A stretch of DNA of 64,000 nucleotides from IMGVR_UViG_3300024259_002152:62001-126000, one strand, 5' to 3'. Positions 30,439-62,297 are shown, counted from the first letter of the stretch. Made by a program: numbers and translations. Notes: generated by a model from the sequence alone, not told the origin.

Positions 30439-30467
30439 TTAAAAGTGAAAAAATATCGATTTATAAT
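30439..30467 (+). promoter_or_regulatory. Putative promoter (motif copy 1): TTAAAAGTGAAA-...-TATAAT
   Basis: TTAAAA at 30439-44, 17-nt spacer, TATAAT at 30462-67; lies in the gap after the structural operon. Confidence 0.65.
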
Positions 30468-32594: not shown

Positions 32595-32901
32595 ATTAAT
32601 AGGAACTACTGTATTTTATTGGCATGATGCTAAAAAGGAAATGCCAAAGTATGATAGGCCAGTTCTCTTAAAAAGAGAGCCACGTGATAAAGGCAATCCA
32701 ACAAGAGAGAATTTTATTAGTGCATGTCGGAAAATAGATTGGTCCGACGGGCAGGATTATTGGGATTATGTTGGGAAGGTATTTGAAGAATATGAGTTTA
32801 ATGTTGTTGGTTGGGCATATCTGGCAGAAATGGTATCTAATGATATATCAGAGAATAAGACAAGTGAAATAAATGATAGATTTGAGATATTAGATTTATA
32901 G
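32569..32901 (+). CDS. DUF551-like small phage protein with C-terminal RFEILDL tag (start probably ATG 32587)
   Basis: WHDAKKEMP...VVGWAYL pattern; ends INDRFEILDL*. Confidence 0.65.
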   Translation: MIENLDMNKLIGTTVFYWHDAKKEMPKYDRPVLLKREPRDKGNPTRENFISACRKIDWSDGQDYWDYVGKVFEEYEFNVVGWAYLAEMVSNDISENKTSEINDRFEILDL

Positions 32902-35420: not shown

Positions 35421-35449
35421 TTGAAAAGTGAAAGTAATAGAAATATTAT
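35421..35449 (+). promoter_or_regulatory. Putative promoter (copy 3)
   Basis: TTGAAAAGTGAAA at 35421, 17-nt spacer, TATTAT at 35444-49; ATG at 35456. Confidence 0.65.
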
Positions 35450-43147: not shown

Positions 43148-43771
43148 ATGAATTTTCATATCAATAAAATATTAGAAGAAAAGACTATTACTTCTTACCT
43201 CGAAGAGAAGGGAGTGCTTCCTCAGAAAAAAACAGGAGATAAATATGTTTATCGTTGTCCTGTTCATCAGGGGGATAATGATCCATCTTTTATTGTTTAT
43301 CCTGTTGGGACAAAAAGTAGAAATTATCAGACATATTACTGCTTTGGCTGTCATTCAGGGATTACTTTAATTAATTTAAAAAGTGATCTCGAGGGAATAA
43401 GCACGAAAGAATCTGTTCGGCATTTTCTTAAAGATGTAAAAATAGATAGTCAAGATGTGATGCAGTCTATTATAGATGATCTTAAAAAGAATGAATCAGG
43501 TATTGAGGACAATAAGAGTGTTGAATTTTTATTGTTATTGATTAATACTACGTGTCGGAGACATATCGTAGAGCAATGTCAGAAGGATGAAGAGGAAATA
43601 ACTTTTTTTGAGAAGTTTTTTCAGAGGGTTAATGATATAGCTAGAGCTAGAGATGTGGATCTATTGGAAAAGGTGGTTGATCTTTTACCTAGGGGAAATG
43701 AAAAAAGGACACAGAGTTATAATAAGAGAAACGAAATGCAGGAAGTATCTTCTTTAACTTGGAAAATATAG
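43148..43771 (+). CDS. Stand-alone primase zinc-binding domain (CHC2)
   Basis: CPVHQGDNDPSF...YYCFGCHSG; no Toprim domain in this ORF. Confidence 0.85.
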   Translation: MNFHINKILEEKTITSYLEEKGVLPQKKTGDKYVYRCPVHQGDNDPSFIVYPVGTKSRNYQTYYCFGCHSGITLINLKSDLEGISTKESVRHFLKDVKIDSQDVMQSIIDDLKKNESGIEDNKSVEFLLLLINTTCRRHIVEQCQKDEEEITFFEKFFQRVNDIARARDVDLLEKVVDLLPRGNEKRTQSYNKRNEMQEVSSLTWKI

Positions 43772-47456: not shown

Positions 47457-47717
47457 ATGCCAATTTATGAGTACGAACACCCTGAGACAGGGGAGATATT
47501 TAGAGAAATAAGAAAAGTGAAAGAGAGAGATAATCCTTTTATATCTAAAGATGGAAAGATATGTAAAAGGATAACATTTCCTGGGGGAATAAAAGGTTGG
47601 AAGAAGAATAGGGAAGTTTTCGAAGCTGATCCTGCGTATGTTAAGCAGTCCAACCCCAAGTTCGTTCAATTCCAAGACGGTCATAAAGAGAGATATGACT
47701 CTACAAAACACTGTTGA
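47457..47717 (+). CDS. FmdB-family zinc-ribbon-like protein lacking most of the Cys ligands
   Basis: MPIYEYEHPETGEIF resembles MPIYEYxCxxCG of FmdB proteins. Confidence 0.65.
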   Translation: MPIYEYEHPETGEIFREIRKVKERDNPFISKDGKICKRITFPGGIKGWKKNREVFEADPAYVKQSNPKFVQFQDGHKERYDSTKHC

Positions 47718-47748: not shown

Positions 47749-48108
47749 ATGAGATTTATACGTAAAGAGTTTATAGTTACTACTATATTTAATAAAGAAT
47801 TAACAGAGAGGGACGAAGTCCTAATCGTTTTTAACAATTTATTAAATGAGAGGATAGAGTTCGCTATGACTATGAAGAAGTATATGCCTATGCAACAAGA
47901 CTATTTCAATATGAGTTTTGAAAAAGTTAGGGTGAAGAGAATCAACGATGATGATACTGTTGATTTGTTAGCTTTCAAGAGTGGGGTTAAAACTAACATA
48001 AAGGGGGTTCCTTTTGATCATATCATAGAAGTAAATGCGACTACTAAAAAACATAAAATTTTAGATATTGACTCCGATTTAAATCGTTTTGATATATTAG
48101 ACTTGTAA
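47749..48108 (+). CDS. Hypothetical protein with C-terminal tag (NRFDILDL)
   Basis: 119 aa. Confidence 0.7.
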   Translation: MRFIRKEFIVTTIFNKELTERDEVLIVFNNLLNERIEFAMTMKKYMPMQQDYFNMSFEKVRVKRINDDDTVDLLAFKSGVKTNIKGVPFDHIIEVNATTKKHKILDIDSDLNRFDILDL

Positions 48109-48815
48109 TGACAGAAGAAGTAAAAAAAGAAGTAAAAGAATTAATAGATCAATATAAATTAGATTGTTCTATTGAAGAGTTTAAAAACAAAGCAAATTGG
48201 GAAAAAATTTCTCATTATGACTTCCTTTCAGAAGATTTTATTAGAGAATTTCAAGATGAAGTACATTGGGAATATCTTTGTTTTTATCAACTATTGCCAG
48301 AAGACTTTATTAGAGAATTTAAAGACGAGGTACATTGGGATAATGTTTTTATATGTCAAAAAATATCAGAGAATTTTATTAGAGAATTTAAGGATAAAGC
48401 AAGTTGGAGAGAAATTTCTTATTATCAAGAATTATCAGAGAATTTTATTAGAGAATTTAAAGATGAAGTAAATTGGAACAATATTTGTCAGAAACAAAAG
48501 TTATCAGAGAATTTTATTAGAGAATTTCAGGATAGGGTAAATTGGCATTGGACTCCCTTTTATCAAACCTTATCAGAAGATTTTATTAGAGAGTTTCAAG
48601 ATAAAGTAGATTGGGTGGCTGTATCTTTTTGTCAAGTATTATCAGAAGATTTTATCAGGGATTTTAGAGACAAGATTTCTTTAGGGTATTTATCGAGTAA
48701 TCAAAAAATAAATGTCTCAGAAGAATTTCGAAAAGGAATAAAAAATGGAAAAATATTACCTCCTCCAATAAAACCATTTTCTTTTGGTAATAGAGTAGAA
48801 ATGTTGGACTTATAA
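48108..48815 (+). CDS. 23-aa tryptophan-repeat protein (7 repeats) with C-terminal tag (NRVEMLDL)
   Basis: W-x6-Q-x-LSE[D/N]FIREF-x-D-x-V-x repeated; tag at 48792-48815. Confidence 0.85.
   Translation: MTEEVKKEVKELIDQYKLDCSIEEFKNKANWEKISHYDFLSEDFIREFQDEVHWEYLCFYQLLPEDFIREFKDEVHWDNVFICQKISENFIREFKDKASWREISYYQELSENFIREFKDEVNWNNICQKQKLSENFIREFQDRVNWHWTPFYQTLSEDFIREFQDKVDWVAVSFCQVLSEDFIRDFRDKISLGYLSSNQKINVSEEFRKGIKNGKILPPPIKPFSFGNRVEMLDL
48198..48680 (+). repeat. Seven imperfect 69-bp tandem repeats (core TCAGA[A/G][G/A]ATTTTATTAGAGAATTT)
   Basis: Visible in DNA and in protein; first Trp codon at 48198. Confidence 0.85.
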
Positions 48816-49162
48816 TGTATAGAGTTGTAGTATTAAAAGAGAAAGATAATAGTTGTTCAGGTTGTTTTGGAAAATCACTTGGATTCTGCTCGAGTTATCA
48901 GTGCCTTACAGGAAATACCTCTTCTGATAGGTCCACTACTGCTTGTATTAATAAAAACAAAGATATTAATAGATATGTCCAGGGTTTTTTGAGATCAAAA
49001 GCACAAGTCCTAAATGACTATAATAGCACAGAAGAAGTTATTAATTCGTTCATAAGATATCTAGAAAATATTGGTAGTACAGATGATGATGCTATTATTG
49101 TAGAAGAAAAGGAAGAAAAAGAAGAAATTATTGAAGACAGATTCGAAATGTTGGATTTGTAA
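48815..49162 (+). CDS. Cys-cluster hypothetical protein with C-terminal tag (IEDRFEMLDL)
   Basis: CSGC...C...C...C; 115 aa. Confidence 0.7.
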   Translation: MYRVVVLKEKDNSCSGCFGKSLGFCSSYQCLTGNTSSDRSTTACINKNKDINRYVQGFLRSKAQVLNDYNSTEEVINSFIRYLENIGSTDDDAIIVEEKEEKEEIIEDRFEMLDL

Positions 49163-49650
49163 TGACAGAAAAAGTAAAAAAAGAAGTAGAAGAAATAATA
49201 AAAGAATATAAATCACAAGTTTCTGTTAGTTATATTCGGGCATTTGAAGATCAGAAATTTGAAAGTCAGGCATTTTGGCAGTCTATTTCTCAATTCCAAA
49301 TTTTATCAGAAGATTTTATTAGAGAATTTCAAGATAAAGTATGGTGGTATGCTATTTCTTGGCATCAAAAATTATTAGAAGATTTTATTAGGGAATTTAA
49401 AGATGAAATAAATTGGTATCAAATTTTTTTACATCAAAAATTATCAGAAGGTTTTATTAGGGAGATTACTGAGAACTTGAAAGACGACAAGAAGTTTTAT
49501 TATGAAGAAAATTTAAGATGTTTACTTAGAAACAAAAATATACCAAATCAAATAAGAAAAGAGATAAATAATTATGGAAAAATATTACCTCCTCGTGGTC
49601 CAATAAAATTATTTTCTTTTAGTGATAGAGCAGAAATGTTGGACTTATGA
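49162..49650 (+). CDS. Tryptophan-repeat protein paralog (3 repeats) with tag (DRAEMLDL)
   Basis: Shares N-terminus MTExVKKEV and C-terminal GKILPP...FSF with 48108. Confidence 0.8.
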   Translation: MTEKVKKEVEEIIKEYKSQVSVSYIRAFEDQKFESQAFWQSISQFQILSEDFIREFQDKVWWYAISWHQKLLEDFIREFKDEINWYQIFLHQKLSEGFIREITENLKDDKKFYYEENLRCLLRNKNIPNQIRKEINNYGKILPPRGPIKLFSFSDRAEMLDL

Positions 49651-50165
49651 CAGAAGAATTAAAAAAAGAAATAGAAGAAATAATAAGAATTGAGAATCTT
49701 AGTTGTTCTGTAGAAGAATTTATTATAGAGGCAAATGATCCTATTTATAGAATTCCCATAGAAGAAGTTCCTTCTATGGAGGGGAAGAAAAGGGTGTGTA
49801 TAAAAACTACTCTGTGGAGTAGAATTTGTCAACATTGTAGTTTATCAGAAGATTTGATGAGAGAATTTATTGAATTACTTCATTGGCCTGGTGTATCTTG
49901 TCATCAAAAATTATCAATAGAATTTGTTAGAGAGTTTAAACACAAAATTCATTGGTATTGGCATACTCATAGAACAGATTTGTCTTATGATTTTATTTTA
50001 GAATTTGAAAAATATTTAGATTGGGAATATTTGATGAAAAAGAAATATTATATATCTGATAATCAAGGTTTTTTTAATGGTGATTTAGATTTTTCTTTAG
50101 AAGAATATAAAAGATTTAAAGAAGAAAATAAAATTCATAGTAGATTTGGTATTTTGGACTTATGA
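49647..50165 (+). CDS. Divergent tryptophan-repeat protein (3 repeats) with tag (SRFGILDL)
   Basis: WSRICQHCSLSEDLMREF, WPGVSCHQKLSIEFVREF, WYWHTHRTDLSYDFILEF. Confidence 0.75.
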   Translation: MTEELKKEIEEIIRIENLSCSVEEFIIEANDPIYRIPIEEVPSMEGKKRVCIKTTLWSRICQHCSLSEDLMREFIELLHWPGVSCHQKLSIEFVREFKHKIHWYWHTHRTDLSYDFILEFEKYLDWEYLMKKKYYISDNQGFFNGDLDFSLEEYKRFKEENKIHSRFGILDL

Positions 50166-50189: not shown

Positions 50190-51605
50190 ATGAAATACAA
50201 TAATAAAGATTTTGTTCACTTTCACACACATTCGGAATTTAGTCAGTTTGACGGTTTGGCCAAGGTAGATGATCTTGTTCTTCAAGCTCGAAAGATGGGA
50301 TTTCCATCATTAGCACTTACGGACCATGGATCGGTTATGGGCTGGGTTAAATTTCTCCAGGCAGCAAGAGCTACTAAGGACAAAAAAGGGAAAGATATTC
50401 CTTACGCTCCTATTAAACCTATCCTTGGTTGTGAATTTTATCTGGCTCGAAAAATGAGTATAGGTCAAAATGAGGAGAAAAGAGATACTGATCTTATAAA
50501 AAAATGGCAGCCCGATGGGAGAAGAGGAAATAGACATTTGAATCTCTATGCTATGAATTTTGAAGGATATAAGAATGTATGTCGTATGTCCCAAAGGTCT
50601 TTTACCGAGGGTTTTTATTATGATGCACGTATCGATATTGATTTAATATCAAAACACTCTAAAGGAGTAATGTGTGGTTCAGCATGTCTATCTAGCGTTA
50701 TTAACGCTAATTTAATGTATGGTCGTTACAACCAAGCTAAACAGGTTTGTGGTGTTTTGAATGAGATATTTGATGGTAATTTTTTTCTAGAAATAATGTA
50801 TCATGGGATTAGGGAAGAAAGAGAAATTATTCCTTTAATCTTAAAATTATCATCAGAATTAGATATTCCTGTAGTTGCTACGAATGATTCTCACTACATT
50901 TATAAGGATCAAGGAGAATCTCAAGAAGTCCTATTGTGTATGTCTCAGCAAAGATGTGTTAAAGATCCAAAGAGATTAAAATTTGGTCATATGGAGTTCT
51001 ATCTAAAAAGTGCAGAAGAAATGGGCAGGATGTTTGGGCATATCCCTCATAGTTTGACTAATTCTGTTGCTCTTGCGGAGAGAATTAATACTAAAGATAT
51101 AGAAGATAACCTTTTTGGGGGCATGAGACTGCCAAAGTTCGATATACCTGAAAAGTATAAAAGTCCTTATGATTATTTATCTGATTTAGCATGGCAAGGC
51201 ATGAAAAGAATAGGTTGGGATCAGAGTAAAGAGCATGTTGAAGCACTAAAAAAAGAGTTAGAAGATGTTCTGGTCGCTCAAGAAAATAATAATTATGATT
51301 TCTCAACTTATTTTCTAATTGTTCGTGATTACATTCTTGACGCAAAGGAAAAGGGTGTTTTGGTGGGTTGCGGTAGAGGGAGTGGTTATGCTAGTGTGCT
51401 ATTAAGATGTATTGAAATTACTTATGGAGTTGATCCATTAAAATATGGACTTCTTTGGGAAAGGTTTTTAGGATTTGATTCTAAGAAGTTTATTAAAGAG
51501 TCAGATTTCGGCTTTGAAGAAGATTTGGTGCAGGCGGCGGCAGATAAAGATTTAGGAGGAGATAGAGAGTTAGAAGATGATTTGGGAGGGGTAGATAGAT
51601 ATTAA
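50190..51605 (+). CDS. dnaE: DNA polymerase III alpha, N-terminal fragment (PHP domain to ERFL)
   Basis: FVHFHTHSEFSQFDG, LTDHG, PILGCEFY, ATNDSHY, YFLIVRDYI, VGCGRGS, DPLKYGLLWERFL, then an acidic tail and stop. Confidence 0.93.
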   Translation: MKYNNKDFVHFHTHSEFSQFDGLAKVDDLVLQARKMGFPSLALTDHGSVMGWVKFLQAARATKDKKGKDIPYAPIKPILGCEFYLARKMSIGQNEEKRDTDLIKKWQPDGRRGNRHLNLYAMNFEGYKNVCRMSQRSFTEGFYYDARIDIDLISKHSKGVMCGSACLSSVINANLMYGRYNQAKQVCGVLNEIFDGNFFLEIMYHGIREEREIIPLILKLSSELDIPVVATNDSHYIYKDQGESQEVLLCMSQQRCVKDPKRLKFGHMEFYLKSAEEMGRMFGHIPHSLTNSVALAERINTKDIEDNLFGGMRLPKFDIPEKYKSPYDYLSDLAWQGMKRIGWDQSKEHVEALKKELEDVLVAQENNNYDFSTYFLIVRDYILDAKEKGVLVGCGRGSGYASVLLRCIEITYGVDPLKYGLLWERFLGFDSKKFIKESDFGFEEDLVQAAADKDLGGDRELEDDLGGVDRY

Positions 51606-51619
51606 AGATTGGAAAAATA

Positions 51620-51880
51620 ATGACAGACAAAAAAGAAAAATTTAATATAGGGTGGGGAGACAGACGGGTAGGAGTTATTGGAAAAGATGGAGAAATGATA
51701 GGCAATTTTGTTGTTTTTGACCCCAAAACAAGAATGTTGAAATCTGTTGATGAAAAAGGAGAAGTAGTAAATTTAATTATGGATGCCGATTGTAGGACAT
51801 GGATTCCAGAAGAAATAGAGAAAAAAGAAACAGAAGAGGATATAGGGATAGAGAATCGTTCAGATATTTTGGATATTTGA
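51620..51880 (+). CDS. Hypothetical protein with tag (IENRSDILDI)
   Basis: 86 aa. Confidence 0.7.
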   Translation: MTDKKEKFNIGWGDRRVGVIGKDGEMIGNFVVFDPKTRMLKSVDEKGEVVNLIMDADCRTWIPEEIEKKETEEDIGIENRSDILDI

Positions 51881-51997
51881 AGAAAGTAGATAGATATTAG
51901 TGCAGAGAAGAAAGAGATAATATATCTAAACTTTAGTAATGAATGTTCTATTTGGAAGATTAGTTCTATCATTAACAAAAGGGATGTGAAACATTTT

Positions 51998-52153
51998 ATG
52001 ATAGATGATAATAAATGTTTTGTTATAGGGTGTCTTGGTGTTAATGAAGAAGCATATGTAGGAGAATATGTGTTTTTCAGAGATTTTAATCATTGTCTGA
52101 GGTTTAAAAAAATAGAAGCAATTCATGATAGATTTGAGATAATGGACTTATAG
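51998..52153 (+). CDS. Small ORF missed by the track, with tag (MIDDNKCF...IHDRFEIMDL); frame is open back to 51890
   Basis: Hand translation: 51 aa from ATG 51998; no stop between 51890 and TAG 52151-53. Confidence 0.65.
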   Translation: MIDDNKCFVIGCLGVNEEAYVGEYVFFRDFNHCLRFKKIEAIHDRFEIMDL

Positions 52154-52162
52154 GAGAAAAAA

Positions 52163-52687
52163 ATGAAGAGATCGTGTCATATTTGCAAACATGGTGTTAT
52201 AGTTGAATATAAATATGAAGATGATTATGACGAGGACTATATTTTTAAAGGATCGGTTATATTTTGTATTGCAAATCCTCCTCTTTTTGTAGGGGATGAT
52301 GATCATCGTTTTGGGAATGATCTTCAGATCGTAGAAGGAGAAAAGGAGATAAAGGAATATTGTTATTATCCTGTTGTTTATAGAAATGATAATGAGAATA
52401 TAGAAGAAGATGATGAAGATGATGAATATTATGGTAATGGAGAGATAAGTGTTGCTCCTTGTTCTCTTTATTGTGAATCGGCCACTAATAAAACTAAATA
52501 TACGAAGAAATTGGAGAAAATAGAAAAAGAAAAGCAAGAGCAAATAAAAAAAGCAGAAACTAAGAAGAAAGCAGAAGCCAAGAAAAAAGCCGATAAGTTA
52601 CAACGTAAAAAAAATAATAAAAAACGGAAACTAAAAGAGCAAGAAGAAATGAAATTAAAAAACAGATTTGAAATATTGGATATATGA
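52163..52687 (+). CDS. Cys-containing protein with Lys-rich coiled coil and tag (NRFEILDI)
   Basis: CHIC..., KKAE repeats; AGGAG RBS overlaps the preceding stop. Confidence 0.7.
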   Translation: MKRSCHICKHGVIVEYKYEDDYDEDYIFKGSVIFCIANPPLFVGDDDHRFGNDLQIVEGEKEIKEYCYYPVVYRNDNENIEEDDEDDEYYGNGEISVAPCSLYCESATNKTKYTKKLEKIEKEKQEQIKKAETKKKAEAKKKADKLQRKKNNKKRKLKEQEEMKLKNRFEILDI

Positions 52688-53010
52688 AATACAAAGTAGG
52701 AGATAAAGTAAGGATTAAGATATGGGAAGACATGTTAATAGAGTTGTGTAATTATTGGGAGACTCTAGAACAGGCAAGAAACCGTCTTGAGGATCAACAT
52801 ATCTGTCTTGAAAAGGAACTTAACAAGGTAAATGTTGATAGGATTTTGACTATTGAAAGTATAGAAAAACGTGAAGGTTATTATTGTTATCGTACAAAGG
52901 AGAAAGGTTGGGAATGGACTGAGGATATGATAGAAGGGATAGTAGAAGACGTGATAGAGGACCGAATTGAGGATAGAATAGAAAGTAGATTTGAGATATT
53001 GGATATATGA
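52684..53010 (+). CDS. KOW/SH3-like small protein with tag (IEDRIEDRIESRFEILDI)
   Basis: Paralog of 30506 and 53671. Confidence 0.75.
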   Translation: MKYKVGDKVRIKIWEDMLIELCNYWETLEQARNRLEDQHICLEKELNKVNVDRILTIESIEKREGYYCYRTKEKGWEWTEDMIEGIVEDVIEDRIEDRIESRFEILDI

Positions 53011-53402
53011 AATTTATAGAAGTAATAGATTATAATAAGTCATATCCTCAAGGTATTTTTGTAAAAATTCCTATCAAAGATATAAAGAAATTTCATAAGG
53101 TTGAAAAATATACTAGATATTATATAGATTTAGATGATTCAGAACGTTTGTTAAAACGTAAGTATAAAGAACACCTTGGTAATCACATGTTTATCGAGAA
53201 ATCTGAAAATGGTCAATATTATAGTGCTGGGATTATGATTAATCATAAAACACAGATACAATGCCAATCGTCATGTGGTGGTAGTATATATTTTTATTTT
53301 TCAGATTTGGATTATGAAGAATTTGAGGGAGAAGCTCGGTTGTATGATTTGTCGTTACATATTGCCGATATTAATTATAGATTTGAGATATTGGATATAT
53401 AA
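53007..53402 (+). CDS. Hypothetical protein with tag (DINYRFEILDI)
   Basis: 131 aa; ATGA overlap. Confidence 0.7.
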   Translation: MKFIEVIDYNKSYPQGIFVKIPIKDIKKFHKVEKYTRYYIDLDDSERLLKRKYKEHLGNHMFIEKSENGQYYSAGIMINHKTQIQCQSSCGGSIYFYFSDLDYEEFEGEARLYDLSLHIADINYRFEILDI

Positions 53403-53404
53403 AA

Positions 53405-53671
53405 GTGACAGATAAAGAATTTTTACAGATGGTGAGAAATTCATTTGCTCAGGTTCGTAATAAGGGTAATTTGCCTACTGGTCCTGAGCTAATTGAATCA
53501 TTATTATCAGTTCAACCTATGACTGATGAATTAGTTGCAGAGGGATATACTAATGAATTAATAAAATTAGGAAGTTCTAATTTGCAGCGTAAAAAAGTTA
53601 TTATTACAGCATATATGGATATTAATTATAGATTTGAAATATTGGATATACAAAAACAGGAGATAAAGTAA
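53405..53671 (+). CDS. Hypothetical protein; tag extended by QKQEIK
   Basis: GTG start; ...RFEILDI then CAA where sister copies have TAA/TGA/TAG. Confidence 0.65.
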   Translation: MTDKEFLQMVRNSFAQVRNKGNLPTGPELIESLLSVQPMTDELVAEGYTNELIKLGSSNLQRKKVIITAYMDINYRFEILDIQKQEIK

Positions 53672-53940
53672 TGAAATATAAAACAGGAGATAAAGTAAGG
53701 ATAAAGACAAAGGGTCAGATGGAGAAAGAATTTGGCTATTATGACGAAGAAAGCAAATTCATAAATTGTGATCAACATTTTTCTTCTATTATGGAAGAGG
53801 CACTGAATCGGCTAGATAGTGATAGAATTCTTACTATTAATCATTTAGAATATTTTCAAAATGTTAATTATTATTACATGAGGGAAATAGAGGGATTTTG
53901 GACTGATGATATGATAGATGAGTTAGTAAATGATAAATAG
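53671..53940 (+). CDS. KOW/SH3-like small protein; tag lies just downstream in the +1 frame (possible frameshift)
   Basis: MKYKTGDKVRIK...; 53930-53962 reads MINRFEILDI* in the +1 frame. Confidence 0.7.
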   Translation: MKYKTGDKVRIKTKGQMEKEFGYYDEESKFINCDQHFSSIMEEALNRLDSDRILTINHLEYFQNVNYYYMREIEGFWTDDMIDELVNDK

Positions 53941-53971
53941 ATTTGAGATATTGGATATATAGGAATAAAAG

Positions 53972-54505
53972 ATGAGTGAAGTAAGTAAATTATCAGAAGA
54001 AGATCTTAAAAAAATAGCGGATATGATGGTTGATCAGGCAGTAGTGCCGTCTCCTAAAGCAATTATTAAAATAGAAAATGAGACTGTTCCTGAAACTGAT
54101 ACAATTAAAAGATATAAAAGGTCTAATAAACAATTACGGACAAAAGTAGAAAGACAGATTAGCGAAATAGCCAAACAGGAAGCAGAGATAAAAGAGTTGC
54201 AGGTAAGTGCTTATCTTAATACGGATGAGGCTAAAGATACGATCAATAAAAAATTAAGAGAAGAAAAACAAGCATTAAAGCTAAAAATGGAAGAGCAGGG
54301 ATTAAATTTTGAAAAAGAGCGCAAAGAAATAATAGAGACAAGAAGTAAGATTTATGAGTTAGAACGAACAATAGGGAGTAATAAGAAAGAGATTGAGGGG
54401 CTAAGAACAGAAGTGGATCAATTAATGAATGATAATAGAGAACTTCAAGCAGAGATAGATGCTAGAATTAAAGCAGATGGTAGATTTAATATAATGGATT
54501 TATAA
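53972..54505 (+). CDS. Coiled-coil protein with tag (GRFNIMDL)
   Basis: 177 aa, heptad-rich. Confidence 0.75.
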   Translation: MSEVSKLSEEDLKKIADMMVDQAVVPSPKAIIKIENETVPETDTIKRYKRSNKQLRTKVERQISEIAKQEAEIKELQVSAYLNTDEAKDTINKKLREEKQALKLKMEEQGLNFEKERKEIIETRSKIYELERTIGSNKKEIEGLRTEVDQLMNDNRELQAEIDARIKADGRFNIMDL

Positions 54506-54506
54506 T

Positions 54507-54541
54507 TTGCAAAGTGAAAGTTTTGAAAATATATTTAGAGA
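54507..54541 (+). promoter_or_regulatory. Putative promoter (copy 6) for DnaE C-fragment, ATG at predicted +1
   Basis: TTGCAAAGTGAAA at 54507, 17-nt spacer, TATATT at 54530-35, ATG at 54542. Confidence 0.7.
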
Positions 54542-56515
54542 ATGGCAGATTTAGCAGATATTAAAAAAGAGATAATAGGATATATCACTAAAAAGCACTC
54601 CAAGAGCGATAAATTACCAAAAATTATTTCTAAAGTGAAAGAAGAACTCGATGTTTTAGAATCGACTGACGGTTTAGAAGGCAAGAATAATTTAGAAGTA
54701 TTTTATAATACATGGAAGAGCCACAAGGGAGAGGTGGGTCATAAAAATGACATTAATAGTTGGGCTGCTTTCTTCCTGGGGATAACGGAAGTAAAACCTG
54801 ATGGAGATTTTCTTCCGACTAGGCGTGCTTTTGCTAGGGCGGGATTCCCTGATATTGACACTGATTTTGATTACGAGAATAGGGATACTGTTTATTCTTA
54901 TATAATTGATAAGTATGGAAGAGAGAATGTAGGGAATATTGGCACTCACGGATTATTGAAATTTAAATCATGTGTGACCAGGGTGACTAAAGCTTTAGAT
55001 CTAGCAAATGCTTATCACAAAGGTAGTGATGCTTTTGTTAGCGAAAATGCTGCTAAGGTAACAGAAATTTTATCTCCTTTTCCGAAAATGGGACTAGTGA
55101 AAGTTACTGACGATGATGGTGAAAGTTACCTTATAAAAACTTTCCAAGATGCTTATGATCATTGTCCAGATTTTAGACATTATGTTGACAAATATGAGAG
55201 TAGTCATTTCAAAGAATATATGGAGCATATAGAAGGGACATTTGCTAATTTCGGCTGCCATGCTGCAGGAATAGTTGTTTCTGATATTCCTCTTGATGAA
55301 ATTGCTCCTTTGAGAAATGCTAAAAAGGGAGTTCTTGCCACTCAATTCCCTAATGAAGATTTGGAATCAATAGGTCTTATTAAATTTGATGATCTTGCTC
55401 TTTCTACTTTATCCATTGTGAAAAAAACAGTAAAAATGGTAAAAGAACATTGGGGAATAGAAGTAGATCTAGAAAATCTGCCTATGGAAGATGATGCTAC
55501 TTTCGAATTATATCGTAGAGGAAATTTGGGTGGAGTTTTTCAGTGTGAAAATAGTGGCATGCAAAAAACTATGAGAGATATAGGAGTAGATCGTTTTGAA
55601 GATATTATAGCGGGACTAGCTCTTTATCGTCCTGGACCTATGGATAGTATTCCTGAGTATTGTGCAAGAAAGCATGAAGAAAATGAAATTAGTTACTTTC
55701 ATAGGTCAATTGAGCCATTTGTAAAATCTTATTTAGAAAGCACATATGGAATCTTATGTTATCAAGAGCAAGTTATGCAGATTTGTAATAGTCTTGCAGG
55801 TTTTACTATTACTGATGGCTACATAATGATTAAGTCGATTGGTAAGAAAAAAGAATACTTAATGAAGCGTTTTGAAGAACAATTTATTTTAGGTTGTGAA
55901 AGAAATAAAGTGCCGTCAGATGTTGCTAAGCAATATTGGGATAAATTTATAGTTCCTTTCTCTGGTTATGGGTTTAATTTGGCTCATAGTGCTTGTTATG
56001 GTTATAATTCTTACACTACAGCATATCTAAAAGCTAATTATCCTGATGAATTTATATGTTCTTTATTAGATGTGACGATAAATAGTTCTCAGGGTGAAAG
56101 GTATGATAAAGTTTCAGCATTTGAGAGGGAATTTAAAAGAAAGATGGGTGTTAAATTTCTTCCCAGAGATATAAATAAGTGTAAAGTATCATTTACTATC
56201 GAAAAAAGAAAAGATCTTGCAGAAGGTGTAAAAAAAACAGAAATACGTCCTAGTCTTTTATGTAAAGGGCTTTTAACTAAATCTGCCAAGAACATAGAAG
56301 AAAATCAACCTTATGAAGATATGAGAGATATAGTTAGAAAAACTGATTCTTCGTTAGTTGATACTAGGGTTATAGACGCTTTGGCTACAGGGGGATATTT
56401 AGGTAAAAAGCATATAGAAGACTCTTCTGTTATAGTAAAAGATTTTGTCATGATCAGAGAGGATATGAAAAAAACTGCTAAAAGAGGGGTAGAAACTATT
56501 GATATATTTGGTTAA
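54542..56515 (+). CDS. dnaE: DNA polymerase III alpha, C-terminal fragment (catalytic Asp residues, fingers, HhH)
   Basis: GFPDIDTDF, YIIDKYG, GCHAAGIVVS, GLIKFDDLAL, GVFQCE, LALYRPGPM, TYGILCYQEQVMQI, YGFNLAHS, LKANYP. Confidence 0.93.
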   Translation: MADLADIKKEIIGYITKKHSKSDKLPKIISKVKEELDVLESTDGLEGKNNLEVFYNTWKSHKGEVGHKNDINSWAAFFLGITEVKPDGDFLPTRRAFARAGFPDIDTDFDYENRDTVYSYIIDKYGRENVGNIGTHGLLKFKSCVTRVTKALDLANAYHKGSDAFVSENAAKVTEILSPFPKMGLVKVTDDDGESYLIKTFQDAYDHCPDFRHYVDKYESSHFKEYMEHIEGTFANFGCHAAGIVVSDIPLDEIAPLRNAKKGVLATQFPNEDLESIGLIKFDDLALSTLSIVKKTVKMVKEHWGIEVDLENLPMEDDATFELYRRGNLGGVFQCENSGMQKTMRDIGVDRFEDIIAGLALYRPGPMDSIPEYCARKHEENEISYFHRSIEPFVKSYLESTYGILCYQEQVMQICNSLAGFTITDGYIMIKSIGKKKEYLMKRFEEQFILGCERNKVPSDVAKQYWDKFIVPFSGYGFNLAHSACYGYNSYTTAYLKANYPDEFICSLLDVTINSSQGERYDKVSAFEREFKRKMGVKFLPRDINKCKVSFTIEKRKDLAEGVKKTEIRPSLLCKGLLTKSAKNIEENQPYEDMRDIVRKTDSSLVDTRVIDALATGGYLGKKHIEDSSVIVKDFVMIREDMKKTAKRGVETIDIFG

Positions 56516-56744: not shown

Positions 56745-57056
56745 ATGGCAGAAGAAAATAAGACTACTTTGAGATTAGAGATAGATAGAACTATTCAGCC
56801 GAAACAATTTGAGTCGATTAAAGTTATCGTAGATGTGCAGGAAAGTTTTTATTGGAAAGATGAAAAAGATAGAACGAATAAGATAAAAGCTCATACTGAA
56901 AAAATATCAGAAGATTTTGTTTCTACCTTTAATCATGTTGTTAAGAGGATAGGGGAAGAGGATAGGTGTATTGGTAAGGTTATCACTGGTGGTGATGTTT
57001 CTATTGAGGAAAAAAAACAAATTATTTCTTCAGATGATGAGTTTGATTTTGATTAA
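56745..57056 (+). CDS. Hypothetical protein with acidic tail (DDEFDFD)
   Basis: 103 aa. Confidence 0.65.
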   Translation: MAEENKTTLRLEIDRTIQPKQFESIKVIVDVQESFYWKDEKDRTNKIKAHTEKISEDFVSTFNHVVKRIGEEDRCIGKVITGGDVSIEEKKQIISSDDEFDFD

Positions 57057-57068
57057 TAGGTGTAAAGT

Positions 57069-58256
57069 ATGACAAGTGAAAATAGTCTAAAAGAATTTGA
57101 AGAGATGTTTGATCTATCTTCTAAGGATGAAGATAACGGTCAAGCAGAGGAATATGGACATAGTGCTAATTCTGAGGCATCTTTTGATGAATTAGAGGGA
57201 GAGTTAAGCAATGATATAAAAGATGTTTCTGATAAAGGGGCAGCTTTAGAAGTTGTAGAAAATGTTCATGATATTATAAGAGATGTTTCTTCTAAAACCG
57301 AAGAAGAGCAAGAGGCAGATACTGTTTCTCCTGAATCGGAAAAATCAGAGGAGGTAGATACAGATAGTATAGCAGGTATTGTAGAGAGCATGCAGGGTGA
57401 GGATGATTTTGATTGTTTGCCAGATCAGTGTATTCCAGAAAAAAATACTGAGAAGGAAGAAGTATCAGAAGAAGTAGTCGATCTTGCTAAAAATATTGCT
57501 GATTTTCATACAGAAGCAAAGAAAGATGGAAAGGAGGAGGAAACGTCTTTTGATCAAGTTAATGTAGAGAGCGATTCTATGCTTGATGGAGATCAGGTTA
57601 AATGGTCTCTAAAGAGTCCTGCTGGTATGTATGATCCATTTTATAGGCAAAAGAAAAGGGTATTGGATAGTTGTCTTGTTGGTGGCCAAGTGGAATTTAC
57701 TAGGTGGGACAAAGAGTTACAAGATGCCCAGGTTGATGTAGTTAGTGAAGTATTCGATAAGGAAGTAATTACAAAACAGATGGAAGATGTTCAGCAGTTT
57801 AGGAACAGAGTTAAATACATTGGTGTAAGAGTTAATAATCAACATTTTTTATTCGATAGGTTTGTGCCTTTGCTAAGGGGATTTTTGGCACGTATTCAAT
57901 ATCTCAAACCCGTTTTAAAACAAGATGGTCTTATTCTAGAGCATATGGGTGATGTTGAAATGTATTTTGAGAGATTAAGAGGTTTATATAAATCTGTCTC
58001 TGATACTGAAAAGAATTTAGCAGCAGCTTATGAAATGTTGAGTAGAAAAGTCACTATTTGTATGGATTTGCCTCCTGTTGAGAGACATGGTAAACCAGAG
58101 TATAAATCATATCGTTCTAAATTTTCGGAAAATACAATAAATACAGAAGCTGCAGCAGCATCTTCTGAGATGGACGGTTTTGATGATCTTCCTGATAATG
58201 CTAAAGCAGGTGATTCAGGGAATAAAAACGGGACAATAGGATGGGATGATATTTAA
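57069..58256 (+). CDS. Acidic low-complexity N-terminus plus helical C-domain (possible UvsY-like recombination mediator)
   Basis: Helical/coiled-coil C-half and position before SSB and RecA; mediator role is inferred from context only. Confidence 0.4.
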   Translation: MTSENSLKEFEEMFDLSSKDEDNGQAEEYGHSANSEASFDELEGELSNDIKDVSDKGAALEVVENVHDIIRDVSSKTEEEQEADTVSPESEKSEEVDTDSIAGIVESMQGEDDFDCLPDQCIPEKNTEKEEVSEEVVDLAKNIADFHTEAKKDGKEEETSFDQVNVESDSMLDGDQVKWSLKSPAGMYDPFYRQKKRVLDSCLVGGQVEFTRWDKELQDAQVDVVSEVFDKEVITKQMEDVQQFRNRVKYIGVRVNNQHFLFDRFVPLLRGFLARIQYLKPVLKQDGLILEHMGDVEMYFERLRGLYKSVSDTEKNLAAAYEMLSRKVTICMDLPPVERHGKPEYKSYRSKFSENTINTEAAAASSEMDGFDDLPDNAKAGDSGNKNGTIGWDDI

Positions 58257-58338: not shown

Positions 58339-59043
58339 ATGGCAGAGTATGTTCAATGGGGCGCAGTCCCACAAGGCGGTGGCAATGGAGAGAAATCGGA
58401 GTATCTGAAGCTAAAGAGTGGCAATACGTATAAAATTCGCCCAGTGTTTGACCCTGTGGTATTTTATAAGTATTTTCACAAACATGAAGGCAAATTAAGA
58501 ACAGCTATTTGTGCAAAACCTGATGTTTGCCCTGTTAGAGACAGGCATCCGGATCTTAAAAAACCTTCTAAACGTTATGCGGCTTACGTTATTGATCGAG
58601 CTGATGGTAAAGTAAAGATTCTTGAAGCTCCTCAAACTGTTTTCCGTCCAATTGGTAGCAGTTTTGAAGCTACAGGGAAAAATCCTGGTAGTGGAAAAGA
58701 TGGTAGTGATTGGCAGATCAAAGTTACAGGAACGGGTTTGAATACTACTTATGATGTGGCGTTTGCAGGTAATACCCCTCTCACTCAAGAGGAGATAGCA
58801 TTGTTCAAGGAAGCCTTGGACGGGGATAAGCTAAAGCTTCAGAAGCTTTATAAGGTTGATACTCCACCAGAAATTGAAGAAAAGTTGTTTGGAGATCTCA
58901 ATAAAACAGAAGCTGAGCCTTCTGTTGATATGGGCTTTGATAGCTCACCTGATTCAACACCTGATTCAACACCTGATTCAACACCTGTTGCAACAGCAGA
59001 CACTGCGACAGATAGTGGAGATGATTGGGAAAGCAACTTTTAA
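58339..59043 (+). CDS. ssb: Single-stranded DNA-binding protein (T4 gp32-like) with acidic tail
   Basis: YLKLKSG.TYKIRPV...HKH...C...CPV...RYAAYVIDR.DGKVKILE...GTGLNTTYDV; ends GDDWESNF. Confidence 0.75.
   Translation: MAEYVQWGAVPQGGGNGEKSEYLKLKSGNTYKIRPVFDPVVFYKYFHKHEGKLRTAICAKPDVCPVRDRHPDLKKPSKRYAAYVIDRADGKVKILEAPQTVFRPIGSSFEATGKNPGSGKDGSDWQIKVTGTGLNTTYDVAFAGNTPLTQEEIALFKEALDGDKLKLQKLYKVDTPPEIEEKLFGDLNKTEAEPSVDMGFDSSPDSTPDSTPDSTPVATADTATDSGDDWESNF
58948..58987 (+). repeat. (CCTGATTCAACA)x3 tandem repeat encoding PDST in the SSB linker
   Basis: Exact 12-bp units read directly. Confidence 0.9.
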
Positions 59044-59057
59044 AGAGGGTTATCAAT

Positions 59058-60188
59058 ATGGCAAAAAGTAAAAGTAATAAAGCGAATGAAGATGAACTTT
59101 TTAAAAACCTAGGAGGTTTTTGTCAGATGGGAGCCAGGGCATCGAGCCCTGGTAACATCCCTACAGGTCATTTTAATTTGGATTTTATTATCCAGTATGG
59201 TCAAGATCCTACCAAAGTGGATTTGAATAGTCTCGAAGGATATGATCCTAAGACTGCTCTTGGAATACCATTAGGAAAATTGGTTGAAATATTTGGAGAA
59301 GAAGGTAGTGGCAAATCATCCTTAGCGTATCGTATTGCAGGCTATGCTCAAAAGATGGGATACAAGACTGCATGGATTGATGTTGAGCATTCTTTTCAAG
59401 AAAATTTAGCATATATTAATGGTTGTGATATTGATAAGTTGATTTATTCCAATATGGTAAATCATGAAAATCCTGATGATGATTATTATGCGGAAGATGT
59501 GATCGATGCTATGCAGCTAATGATGAAAAATGGAGTTCAAGTTATAGTTTTGGACTCTGTTGCTAATTTGATTCCTAAAAGTTTGTTCGAGGCAGCAACT
59601 GAAAAAGAGTTTATGGGGTTGCTGTCAAGATTGTTGAGTAAATCTTTAGGTAAATTAGTTTCTTATGCTGAGAAATATGGAGCATTGCTTGTTTTTATTA
59701 ATCAGTTAAGAGAAAAAATAGGACAAACTTGGGGAGACCCAAGAACAAGTCCAGGTGGTCATTCTTTACATCATAATGCCTCTTTGCGTTTGCGAATGGA
59801 TAAACGAAATGCTAAAGAGGCAGACATCTTTGTTCCAGATCCTGAAACGGGCGAGGATATGTTGATAGGTAGACATTCTAAGGTAGCTCTGATTAAGAAT
59901 AGATTTGCTAAACCGTATAGGGAGTCTCTTGATGTGCCCATTTATTACGAGGCTTATTTTCCAGAGATAGATGATATCGCTTTCGATACGGGTAGACAGA
60001 TAAAACTTATTTCAGTTAGGAAAGGAATCTTTAGTTGGGGTGAGTTAAAAATAGAAGGAAGAAAAGCTTTTATTGATCATATTATAAAAAATAAGCTTAC
60101 AGATAAACTTATTGAAGCAATAAGAGTCAAAGCTTCTGAAAAAGATCTTATCCTGCCTCCCGAGATTGTCCTATATGGATCAGAGTAA
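59058..60188 (+). CDS. recA: RecA/UvsX recombinase (track start 59025; ATG 59058 more likely)
   Basis: IPTG..NLD, GKLVEIFGEEGSGKS, WIDVEH, VIVLDSVANL, FINQLREKIG, SPGGHSLHHNASLRL, KNRFAKPYR. Confidence 0.92.
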   Translation: MAKSKSNKANEDELFKNLGGFCQMGARASSPGNIPTGHFNLDFIIQYGQDPTKVDLNSLEGYDPKTALGIPLGKLVEIFGEEGSGKSSLAYRIAGYAQKMGYKTAWIDVEHSFQENLAYINGCDIDKLIYSNMVNHENPDDDYYAEDVIDAMQLMMKNGVQVIVLDSVANLIPKSLFEAATEKEFMGLLSRLLSKSLGKLVSYAEKYGALLVFINQLREKIGQTWGDPRTSPGGHSLHHNASLRLRMDKRNAKEADIFVPDPETGEDMLIGRHSKVALIKNRFAKPYRESLDVPIYYEAYFPEIDDIAFDTGRQIKLISVRKGIFSWGELKIEGRKAFIDHIIKNKLTDKLIEAIRVKASEKDLILPPEIVLYGSE

Positions 60189-60895
60189 TGAACAAATGGA
60201 TAAATGGGTTTCCTGAAACTGAAAGACATAAAATTGTCAATGCGGCTAAAATAACTCTTTCTAAACCTGAGGGGAAAATTGCTCTTGATTATTTACTTAA
60301 TGAAAGAAAATTTTCTCCTGACATAATTGAAAAGTTCGATATGGGCTATTGCCCTTCAGATGTAAATCATGAAGTAAGAGGTAGAATTATTACTCCTATC
60401 TATAGTGCTTATGGGGAATTGGTCGCCCTATCAACTCGTCATTTAGATAAGAATCATTCTCAAAGATTTTTACACGAATCATTTGATAAAGGTTCTTATC
60501 TTTATGGCTTATTTTACGCGAAAGAAAATATTCAAAGAACTAATAAAGTGATTATTGTTGAGGGAGAGTGTGATGTAGCCTGTTTTCATACTTTTGGGTT
60601 CAATATGACTGTTGGACTATGCGGAAGTGCTTTTACTCTTTTTCAGACGGCTCTTTTAACGAAATATTGTACAGATTATTATCTTTTATTTGATGGAGAT
60701 GAAGCTGGTAGGAGATCGATAAAAAGAGCTATGGAATCTTATGAGAAATATAATCTAAGTGCTTATTCATTAAGGTTCATTCCTGTTTATCTTCCTAAGA
60801 ATTGCGATCCTGACGATTTCCTGATCAGAGAAGGTAAAAAAAACATGATAGAGAAACTAAAAACATCTAAAGAAGATTGTGGATTTAATATTTAA
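60188..60895 (+). CDS. dnaG: DNA primase catalytic (Toprim) core lacking the zinc-binding domain
   Basis: ALDYLLNER, RGRIITPI, SYLYGL, IIVEGECDV, LFDGDEAG, DPDDF. Confidence 0.88.
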   Translation: MNKWINGFPETERHKIVNAAKITLSKPEGKIALDYLLNERKFSPDIIEKFDMGYCPSDVNHEVRGRIITPIYSAYGELVALSTRHLDKNHSQRFLHESFDKGSYLYGLFYAKENIQRTNKVIIVEGECDVACFHTFGFNMTVGLCGSAFTLFQTALLTKYCTDYYLLFDGDEAGRRSIKRAMESYEKYNLSAYSLRFIPVYLPKNCDPDDFLIREGKKNMIEKLKTSKEDCGFNI

Positions 60896-61970: not shown

Positions 61971-62297
61971 GTGGTTATGACAGAAGGCGTTAATGAAAAA
62001 AATGAGGCAAAAGATGAAACTTTACTTTTGGTTAGTGGAGGCAAGGGGGGAGATAAAGAGTATATTAAAAAACTTTCTAATGCTATTATGCAAGTATATG
62101 CAAAGCACTCAGCAGTAAAGTTGAGGTGTGTAGGAGCAGCTTCTCTTAATAATGGTATTAAATCTTTTATTATTGCCAAGGGAGAAGCAAAAAAGAATGG
62201 GGATAATCTATGGATGAGTCCTAGTTTTACAACTGTTGATTTTAATGGGGAAGAAAAAACAGGTATTCTGTTAGAGGTCTTATCAAAAGAGGAATAA
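61971..62297 (+). CDS. spoVS: SpoVS-family (Alba-like) protein
   Basis: LLVSG...LSNAI...VGAASLNNGIKSFIIAKG...SPSFTTVDFNGEEKTGI matches the SpoVS pattern GAGALNQAVKAVAIARG...PAFTDIQIDGEERTAI. Confidence 0.8.
   Translation: MVMTEGVNEKNEAKDETLLLVSGGKGGDKEYIKKLSNAIMQVYAKHSAVKLRCVGAASLNNGIKSFIIAKGEAKKNGDNLWMSPSFTTVDFNGEEKTGILLEVLSKEE

Follow-up and report, generated by a model that had tools for sequence, protein, structure and literature searches.

A DnaE polymerase encoded by two genes

Can a replicative DNA polymerase of the DnaE type (C family) be made of two polypeptides that are never joined covalently? The question arises from a 64,000-nt stretch of the IMG/VR contig IMGVR_UViG_3300024259_002152 (350,866 bp; positions 62001–126000), hereafter the window, where DnaE sequence is divided between two genes on the + strand. 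The first gene (50190–51605; 471 aa, the N-half) encodes the PHP domain, the N-terminal, nucleoside triphosphate (NTP)-binding part of the palm and a conserved tail. The second (54542–56515; 657 aa, the C-half) encodes an N-terminal extension, the Mg-binding part of the palm, the thumb, the fingers and the helix-hairpin-helix (HhH) domain. The genes are 2,936 nt apart, and the gap holds eight open reading frames (ORFs). A first-pass annotation of the sequence had proposed a split DnaE that works without an intein; both halves do lie where it placed them, with the motifs that it quoted (GRGS, PDIDTDF and KFDD). To our knowledge, replicative C-family polymerases are normally single chains, and the only well-known split one is religated by an intein. 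We put at about 0.78 the probability that the two products form a replicative polymerase without ever being joined covalently, with the nucleotide-binding GS motif supplied by the N-half and the catalytic carboxylates by the C-half.

The N-half matches the Pfam PHP domain (PF02811) at residues 10–205 (E = 1e–41) and positions 2–100 of the Pfam DNA_pol3_alpha profile at residues 329–433. It also matches positions 39–435 of PHROG 405, a full-length phage DnaE profile, and PHROG 7513 over nearly its full length, and aligns to residues 3–440 of M. tuberculosis DnaE1, the best-scoring solved relative (E = 2e–58). The AlphaFold2 (AF2) model of the N-half has a mean predicted local distance difference test score (pLDDT) of 87.2. 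In and around the core of the PHP domain (50217–50804, + strand), nine positions, H12, H14, D21, H46, E82, H116, C166, D233 and H235, are invariant in an alignment of 64 sequences (A3); by analogy with M. tuberculosis DnaE1 we take them to be the metal ligands. Since this set is complete, the N-half is probably a proofreading exonuclease. The GRGS sequence, the GS motif of a Pol-beta-like palm, is encoded at 51372–51383 (+ strand); G395, R396, G397 and G399 are invariant in the same alignment, and S398 is at least 90% conserved.

The C-half matches positions 69–259 of the DNA_pol3_alpha profile, the fingers (PF17657, E = 2e–48), HHH_6 (PF14579, E = 2e–8) and positions 438–924 of PHROG 405. It aligns to residues 317–886 of E. 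coli alpha and to Taq alpha, its best-scoring sequence, where the alignment stops at Taq residue 944. The mean pLDDT of its AF2 model is 88.9, and a Foldseek search with this model gave DnaE structures as top matches (E ∼1e–33, 644–685 alignment columns for the 657-residue query), M. tuberculosis DnaE1 first. PDIDTDF (54848–54868, + strand) contains D106 and D108, which correspond to E. coli D401 and D403. KFDD (55382–55393, + strand), aligned to the KMD of Taq, contains K281 and the third catalytic aspartate, D283 (E. coli D555). In an alignment of 57 sequences that includes canonical DnaEs, D104, D106, D108, K281 and D283 are invariant, and E35, G66, S73, T82, P86, R94 and R99 are at least 90% conserved. 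The C-terminal OB-fold and the tau-binding domain have no counterpart in the C-half gene, which ends ∼35 residues past the HhH domain. Overall, the components of a C-family DnaE (PHP, GS motif and three carboxylates, fingers, HhH) are all present, over two polypeptides; what is missing is a single chain with OB-fold and tau-binding domain.

The first-pass annotation had described the catalytic site as divided between the genes. This holds for the GS motif, which is separated from the aspartates, but D106, D108 and D283 are all in the C-half. As the carboxylates all lie in the C-half and the PHP domain in the N-half, the split also parts the likely exonuclease from the polymerase centre. Assembly of the active site in trans is plausible from the distribution of these motifs. 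The C-half protein ends in ETIDIFG, with IDIFG encoded at 56498–56512 (+ strand), and the C-halves of relatives end in VDLFA, ADIFG, HDIFA or IDLFG. The consensus of the beta-clamp-binding pentapeptide is QL[SD]LF; the terminal IDIFG resembles it and is a candidate clamp-binding motif only.

Conservation of the break across a phage clade

The break is old and occurs widely. In a protein search limited to lengths of 259–824 aa, 1310 proteins match the N-half at E ≤ 1e–10, and the best 120 N-half clusters (53–100% identity) are nearly all ∼430–490 aa long and come from contigs of up to 472 kb. A profile-based survey of IMG/VR, together with three other loci, gave 29 split loci, four contiguous loci of a 'two-copy' form and two contiguous loci with a short link. 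The spacers of the split loci measure from 0 to 2.9 kb: the genes are adjacent or overlapping in L029, L031, L033 and L041, and the window has the longest spacer of the 29. Among 15 outgroup loci (27–31% identity), DnaE is canonical and contiguous in 14, and L062 is ambiguous. The clade is large and consists of diverse phages of 100–550 kb. The same break, with conserved synteny, is found in loci from IMG/VR, NCBI (GCA_004196255.1), ENA and Logan. An assembly artefact, which the first-pass annotation had named as a possible objection, is therefore unlikely.

Both halves evolve under constraint. Between the N-half and that of L002, the proportions of nonsynonymous (pN) and synonymous (pS) differences are 0.096 and 0.635, and for the last 44 residues they are 0.069 and 0.58. 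The ratio of nonsynonymous to synonymous substitution rates (dN/dS) between the C-half and that of L012 is 0.17 over the whole length and 0.10 over the first 97 residues. With synonymous sites close to saturation, all these ratios are rough, but their direction is unambiguous. The proposal that the split is maintained is thus borne out by the 29 loci and by a pN that, for the halves and for their extensions alike, is much lower than pS. Conservation across the clade, combined with this selection, makes a two-subunit polymerase the best reading of the locus.

Contiguous relatives (P0149, P0153, P0185, P0186, P0237; L021, L022, L034) carry in one chain both an N-like segment, ...WERFLGFD..DFG.., and a C-like segment, ..KNNL..N-S..A..LG.T..P..RR... 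They have ∼150 residues between GRGS and PDxDxDF and are devoid of the acidic linker and of the GGVDRY sequence found at the end of the N-half. In a quick maximum-likelihood tree of the C-part, all split forms fall into one clade (SH-aLRT 100%). Nested among these are contiguous forms, with P0175/P0186, P0200/P0180, P0190/P0181 and P0168/P0185 as sister pairs and with P0148, P0149 and P0153 inside the clade. This nesting indicates that fission or fusion took place several times, with at least three changes of state, while the direction of change is unsettled in a quick search with an approximate root. The short-link contiguous forms (P0148, L036, L037) read ...LLWERFLAF-KKSEETGK-RVFARPGFPDIDTDF and contain both the ERFL and the RxFAR elements; they look like secondary deletions of the two-copy form.

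The halves overlap in sequence and carry their own extensions

Where exactly is the polymerase broken? The two genes share ∼25 DnaE profile positions, and four profiles overlap by 24–32 positions. On Pfam PF07733 the N-half extends to position 100 and the C-half starts from 69; the corresponding end and start are 391 and 366 on TIGR00594, 394 and 371 on PRK05673, and 390 and 364 on PRK06826. On contiguous outgroup DnaEs, the N and C queries overlap by 32–90 residues (tblastn). The shared piece is a helix segment, S-x3-A-x2-LGIT-x3-P ... ERF. Its N-half copy (SVLLRCIEITYGVDPLKYGLLWERFL; S..LL..IEIT..DP...LLWERFL) is encoded at 51393–51470 (+ strand), with WERFL ending at 51470. The C-half copy (SWAAFFLGITEVKPDGDFLPTRRAF; SWAAFFLGITEVKP...RRAF) is encoded at 54758–54832 (+ strand) and aligns with high posterior probability to Taq alpha. 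As judged from these alignments, the split is an overlapping one and not a clean cut. The N-half keeps GRGS but has SDFGF in place of the DxD strand; the C-half has GHKNDIN in place of the GPGRGS of canonical DnaE but keeps PDIDTDF. The intact GS motif is hence found in the N-half gene only. These patterns suggest two copies of the stretch that runs from the ELxxV helix to ERFL, decayed in complementary ways.

The first-pass annotation had seen a 44-aa acidic tail at the end of the N-half. The length and the acidic linker are right, but the tail (51471–51602, + strand) is no mere appendage, as its start aligns to DnaE itself and its end is conserved in the family. It consists of GFD.KKFIKESDFGFE, a variable acidic linker and DDLGGVDRY (51576–51602), and the family consensus (alignment A1) is FLGFDxKRFIKESDFGFE, an acidic variable linker and DRExE-DDLGGVDRY-COOH. 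After WERFL the N-half gene reads GFDSKKF..., which aligns to the DnaE segment leading into the DxD strand; in the HMMER alignment with M. tuberculosis DnaE1, KESDFGFEE stands opposite PDIDIDFDD. The last 16 residues (456–471) have pLDDT below 50 in the AF2 model and are predicted to form a flexible, disordered end. The contiguous relatives do not have the tail. We infer that it may act as a tether or docking peptide that partly offsets the lost covalent link, without being indispensable.

The N-half gene also contains a 20-nt direct repeat (51254–51273 and 51566–51585; 18/20 identical). Its first copy codes for ELEDVL, where the half-palm begins, and its second for ELEDDL in the tail; at the corresponding helix the C-half extension reads EELDVLE. 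The repeat could be due to chance or be the trace of a duplication.

The C-half gene has a conserved N-terminal extension of its own, 97 aa long. Residues 1–72 (54542–54757, + strand; alignments A2 and A4) precede the shared helix segment and end in the invariant pair N72-S73. The consensus of the extension is EELDxLExTDGLExKNNLExFYNIWKxxKGKVGHKNDINSWTAxxLGMTxxKPDGEFLPxRRAFARAGFPDIDTDFD, with 24 invariant positions; G66, N69, N72 and S73 are invariant in the family alignment. In the AF2 model it has pLDDT of 85–93 and helices at residues 4–18, 25–40 and 50–60, and is thus predicted to be a confidently folded helical unit.

Proposed completion of the active site

How would two such chains make one polymerase? 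In the two-subunit reading, the halves would assemble non-covalently through the ∼100-residue, clade-specific region that lies between ...WERFL and PDIDTDF. The DLGGVDRY peptide of the N-half and the folded helical extension of the C-half would help this assembly, and the active enzyme would take its GS motif from the N-half and its catalytic carboxylates from the C-half. The DNA between the genes would serve as a permissive site that gathers small accessory ORFs, most of them with an RFEILDL tag in one sub-clade.

Several observations weigh against this arrangement. In alignments to solved DnaE chains, the C-half extension itself occupies the place of the NTP-binding half-palm, and Foldseek aligns almost all of the C-half model to DnaE structures. 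The C-half might therefore polymerise on its own, without recourse to the N-half GS motif. C-half residues 1–72 taken alone show no significant homology to DnaE, and hhalign of the extension against N-half residues 340–436 gave a probability of 0.4%. Finally, the split forms L010, L029 and L033 end right after DFGF and are without the GGVDRY tail, which means that the tail is not essential for assembly.

The main competitor, which we consider unlikely though worth weighing, is a functional uncoupling: the C-half alone would be the polymerase, with its extension standing in for the NTP-binding half-palm and GHKNDIN for GRGS, and the N-half would be a docked PHP exonuclease, comparable to epsilon on alpha in E. 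coli. The three aspartates, K281, the fingers and the HhH domain are indeed all in the C-half; its extension is well folded in the model, placed like the canonical half-palm and invariant at the four positions given above. Moreover, N-half residues 388–436 are mostly coil, without strands, in the AF2 model of the N-half alone. However, the G-R-G-S residues of the N-half, the helix that follows and ERFL are invariant over 64 sequences at 56–83% identity, which would be hard to explain without a catalytic role, and the contiguous relatives keep both segments.

A more far-reaching version of the two-subunit reading is possible but, on our estimate, rather doubtful. The break would lie inside a clade-specific tandem duplication of the nucleotide-binding half-palm, with the GS motif surviving only in the N-half copy and the DxD strand following only the C-half copy. 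On this view, two half-palms would complement each other to form the active site of an obligate heterodimer, and the contiguous two-copy, split adjacent, split with cargo and re-fused forms would document fissions and fusions that recurred at a single permissive site of the polymerase. BLASTP of the N-half overlap region against the C-half extension was not significant, and hmmsearch of the extension (residues 1–94) against PDB sequences gave no DnaE match. Together with the hhalign result, these searches leave a duplication of ∼100 aa unproven; only the overlap of ∼25 residues is firm. Alternatively, the region can be described as an inserted domain of ∼100 aa, specific to the clade, inside which the chain is interrupted.

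Absence of a joining device at the break

The halves might also be joined after transcription or translation into an ordinary DnaE chain, by a group I or group II intron, an atypical split intein or translational bypass. In huge gut phages, genes are often fragmented by introns and inteins, and small group I introns and inteins often reside in essential genes (PMC12880540). In relatives, the very gene studied here is host to inteins and to a split intein elsewhere in its sequence, and in a sister lineage (P0200, P0194) a split intein sits exactly at GRG|S of the GS motif, near the break. Despite these precedents we regard joining as highly improbable. Searches of both halves and of the spacer ORFs against Pfam, PHROGs, NCBIfam and PADLOC revealed no intein, Hint domain or homing endonuclease; none of the eight spacer ORFs matched an HNH, GIY-YIG, LAGLIDADG or PD-(D/E)XK homing endonuclease. 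The ORF at 52684–53010 has a sub-threshold match to the restriction-endonuclease-like EC042_2821 (17.6 bits versus a cut-off of 24.9). Rfam returned nothing in the window at the gathering threshold and nothing even at E ≤ 1 over 51300–54900, where small divergent ribozymes outside Rfam could escape.

The junction itself also speaks against joining. No Cys or Ser nucleophile starts an intein after WERFL, and the N-half has no Hint blocks A and B; the C-half extension has neither block F nor block G, no His before N72-S73 and no terminal HN, and bears little likeness to the genuine C-terminal intein fragments of relatives (…VVHN|S). The N-half gene ends with a conserved peptide and a stop codon, and the C-half gene begins at a conserved Met. 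A joined chain would duplicate ∼25–100 residues, and the number of unrelated spacer ORFs varies from 0 to 8 across relatives. RNA splicing, the other objection foreseen by the first-pass annotation, finds no support in these searches, and the same annotation was right that neither an intein nor a homing endonuclease accompanies the break. The invariant N72|S73 and the sister split intein at GRG|S suggested the C-half extension as a degenerate C-terminal intein fragment. We rejected this candidate, since in the alignment S73 falls four residues past that intein site, and since the N-half gene runs on with DnaE sequence where the N-terminal intein fragment would be expected.

Although the DnaE gene of the clade is a hot spot for inteins, none is present at the N|C break. 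The C-halves of L002 and L003 contain a textbook split intein (...GTFANFG then CLAKDTPILT..., and ...NNIVVHN then SHAAGVVVS), and L005 has a LAGLIDADG intein in the PHP domain. As inteins are so readily recognised elsewhere in the same gene of relatives, which serve as a positive control, their lack at the break is real. The split intein site, FANFG|C...VVHN|S(C)HAAG, extends over L002:12557–16563 and L003:12009–14487. In L002 the intein halves are separated by a 286-aa ORF with a C2H2 zinc finger and by one of 82 aa, a 'fractured gene' layout, and a contiguous mini-intein is present at GYGFNL|C...SRN|SHSAC. Intein-type insertions in other loci of the clade (L038–L041, L045, L048) are at N-half residues ∼81 and ∼230 and at C-half residues ∼241, ∼412 and 481.

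A decaying or mis-assembled DnaE, broken by insertion of foreign ORFs and heading to loss, is the least credible explanation of all: the record length of the window spacer (2,936 nt) and the damaged C-terminal tags of two spacer ORFs (see below) would fit it, but both halves are under strong purifying selection, the same break stands in 29 loci of independent assemblies, all catalytic and PHP residues are intact, and PHROG and Pfam scans of the window ORFs detected no second DNA polymerase.

ORFs between the halves and their C-terminal tag

What are the ORFs that separate the halves? All eight are on the + strand within 51620–54505 (51620–51880, 51986–52153, 52163–52687, 52684–53010, 53007–53402, 53405–53671, 53671–53940 and 53972–54505). 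None has a domain match in Pfam, PHROGs, NCBIfam or PADLOC, the last one giving only weak matches of coiled-coil type. The first-pass annotation had counted eight tagged ORFs between the halves. Eight ORFs there are, but only six end exactly in the tag R-F-[ED]-I-[LM]-D-[LI], the tag is disrupted in the other two, and none of the ORFs is part of the split. The ORF at 53405–53671 runs through the tag into six more residues (..YRFEILDIQKQEIK). The ORF at 53671–53940 stops at ..VNDK, with the tag MINRFEILDI* out of frame at 53930–53962. These two damaged tags reflect either recent decay or a frameshift site.

The tag is not confined to the spacer. Stop-to-stop frames ending in R-x-[EDGN]-[IM]-[LM]-D-[LI] number 16 on the + strand of the window and 0 on the – strand, with ends at 32901, 44422, 47203, 47445, 48108, 48815, 49162, 49650, 50165, 51880, 52153, 52687, 53010, 53402, 53962 and 54505; one of them is the 10-codon remnant at 53930–53962. 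Across 32560–54505 the tag takes the form R-[FLMVAS]-[DEGN]-[IM]-[LM]-D-[LI]-COOH. Its codons vary synonymously (AGA, CGT, CGA and CGG; TTA and TTG; GAT and GAC), and hence the peptide is what is conserved. A DNA signal, such as a ribosome-binding site or promoter, was considered and rejected, as the Arg, Leu and Asp codons vary and the tag is present also where the next gene is distant. Five to six of the spacer copies are nearly identical in DNA, which points to duplication or recombination in the recent past.

L001, L002 and L003 have the tag and L004 and L006 a loose version of it; split-DnaE phages further away, like the outgroups, are without it. Relatives have hardly any spacer genes in common, and distant split relatives have untagged ORFs or none. 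Given this restriction to a sub-clade, the variable content and the lack of domains, the tagged ORFs are accessory cargo in a permissive site and no part of the polymerase. The pattern of the tag (an aromatic residue, an acidic one, two aliphatic ones, Asp, an aliphatic residue and the chain end) recalls the clamp-binding tails of T4 and RB69 proteins and PDZ class II ligands. A tag-like end, ..LCDILDN, also closes the N-terminal intein piece of L003. Immediately upstream of the N-half gene (48108–50165), three paralogous tagged ORFs (235, 162 and 172 aa) consist of 23-residue (69-nt) tandem repeats, LSEDFIREFQDKVxW, in up to 12 copies and without a family match.

A promoter-like element upstream of the C-half gene

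Are the two genes regulated separately, as the first-pass annotation had it? A promoter-like element, AAAGTGAAAG followed after 9 nt by TATATT, lies at 54511–54535 (+ strand), its core beginning 31 nt upstream of the C-half ATG. The pattern AAAGTGAWWG, including the motif at 54507, has eight matches in the window, all on the + strand, versus 1.3 expected, and none of 100 shuffles reached eight. The element recurs in intergenic gaps at 35425, 47718, 56524 and 58275. In the longer form (A/T)AAAGTGA(A/T)(A/T)G, it is seen on the + strand only, at 30442, 35425, 38988, 47718, 54511, 56524 and 58275, with a TATAWT-like hexamer 9–17 nt on. The combination of AAAGTGAWWG and TATAWT likely represents a phage promoter class. 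A scan for the sigma-70 consensus was uninformative (49 sites versus 52 expected).

The C-half gene may thus have an extra promoter. L002 has the same element upstream of its C-half gene, and L006 has it loosely. No copy of AAAGTGAWWG lies just upstream of the N-half gene, the nearest being at 47514 and 47718. Terminator-like sites are four versus 2.5 expected, and none is located between the N-half and C-half genes, so that read-through from upstream is equally possible. Hence, the motif is real and enriched, but separate regulation of the halves does not follow, since the element is shared only by the closest relatives and no terminator divides the genes.

Genomic setting

The window has a G+C content of ∼32% and a positive GC skew over its whole length, and all but one of its ORFs of at least 180 aa are on the + strand. 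The split DnaE is embedded in a replication module, as defined by PHROG matches. Upstream lie genes for an SF2 helicase (35970), a DnaB-like helicase (41538), a primase zinc-ribbon protein (43148) and a PRPP synthetase (44425), the last separated from the N-half gene by a run of small ORFs. Downstream, two conserved genes without assigned function stand between the C-half gene and the gene for a protein resembling single-stranded DNA-binding protein (SSB-like; 58339), which is followed by a UvsX/RecA-like recombinase (59025), a Toprim primase domain (60188) and a Cas4-like nuclease (60906). A tRNA search found none. No near-identical DNA was found among GenBank phages, where the best protein identity is 37%, too low for an annotated relative to be of use.

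The primase, too, is encoded by two genes, 16 kb apart: the zinc-ribbon protein (43148–43771) matches positions 9–99 of PHROG 6444 and the Toprim catalytic protein (60188–60895) positions 130–366. The same separation is present in L010–L012. The three conserved genes on the 3′ side of the C-half gene (56745–57056, 57069–58256 and 58339–59043, the last SSB-like) encode acidic/aromatic tails, ..DDEFDFD, ..GTIGWDDI and ..GDDWESNF, which look like hub-binding peptides of replisome proteins. Far upstream, at 6498–30427, are four very large ORFs (2221, 1967, 2075 and 1047 aa) with almost no PHROG match; a PHROG scan of eight large upstream ORFs (between 139 and 30427) returned almost nothing. As for the host, L010, L011 and L012 encode IF3 and SpoVS homologues, the N-half of one relative (P0052) was binned as 'Clostridiales bacterium', and Shine-Dalgarno-like sequences precede the window genes; taken together these are hints at Firmicutes.

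Comparison with known split polymerases

If the two-subunit reading is true, the palm of Pol III alpha can accommodate a break, bridged non-covalently, between the element that binds the nucleotide and the one that binds the metal. The existence of natural fused and unfused versions allows direct comparison, and the short conserved peptides may be assembly handles. The break also marks an insertion hot spot inside an essential gene. The system could be of use in polymerase enzymology, in intein-free split-protein design and in annotating the genomes of huge phages, in which the two halves at present go by the names 'PHP domain-containing protein' and 'DNA polymerase III subunit alpha'.

M. tuberculosis DnaE1 (PDB 5lew, 7pu7) proofreads with its PHP domain, and the full ligand set of the phage N-half suggests the same there. 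DnaE1 differs from the phage enzyme in that its palm segment is present once, in an undivided polypeptide, and in having the OB and C-terminal domains that the phage enzyme does not have. DnaE of the Bacillus jumbo phage vB_BauM_KLEB27-3 (OM634661) is likewise annotated as two coding sequences. There, however, the break is elsewhere (691 aa + 428 aa) and an HNH endonuclease gene lies between them.

In cyanobacterial DnaE, the split site is further downstream in the protein than the break in the window, and in Aeromonas phage Aeh1 the genes for gp43 and NrdA are split. As in the window, cyanobacterial dnaE consists of two genes that give one polymerase, but there, as cited in PMC3919608 for Ssp and Npu DnaE, a naturally split intein ligates the halves. 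T4-like and 'fractured' genes, or genes in pieces, owe their division to free-standing homing endonucleases (Dassa et al. 2009, PMC2677866). The window resembles these in having an essential phage replication gene in pieces, foreign ORFs in the gap and retained function; it differs in that no endonuclease is detectable in the gap, the break is ancient, the halves overlap in sequence and they carry dedicated extensions. L002 shows a true fractured-gene arrangement, but at another site, in the C-half.

In surveys of bacterial C-family polymerases, the only interrupted DnaEs mentioned are intein-split or frameshifted ones, and our literature searches found no description of the exact arrangement seen in the window. 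The nearest counterpart in the literature is found in group 2.2 jumbo phages, whose minimal split Pol III alpha consists of an NTP-binding and an Mg/DNA-binding protein (Iyer et al. 2021, Viruses 13:63; PMC7824862). Both systems have two stand-alone proteins without an intein and an analogous fission point, between the NTP-binding and Mg/DNA-binding subdomains. However, the two belong to different protein families; the minimal form has no PHP or other DnaE domains, its genes are distant from each other, and it occurs alongside a family B polymerase presumed to be the main replicase. The DnaE of the window is near full-size, with PHP, fingers and HhH, and its genes are 2.9 kb apart (adjacent in some relatives), with overlapping sequence and dedicated extensions. 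Overall, split replicative polymerases were already known, and what the window and its relatives add is an overlapping break, extensions dedicated to each half and a natural series of fused and unfused forms.

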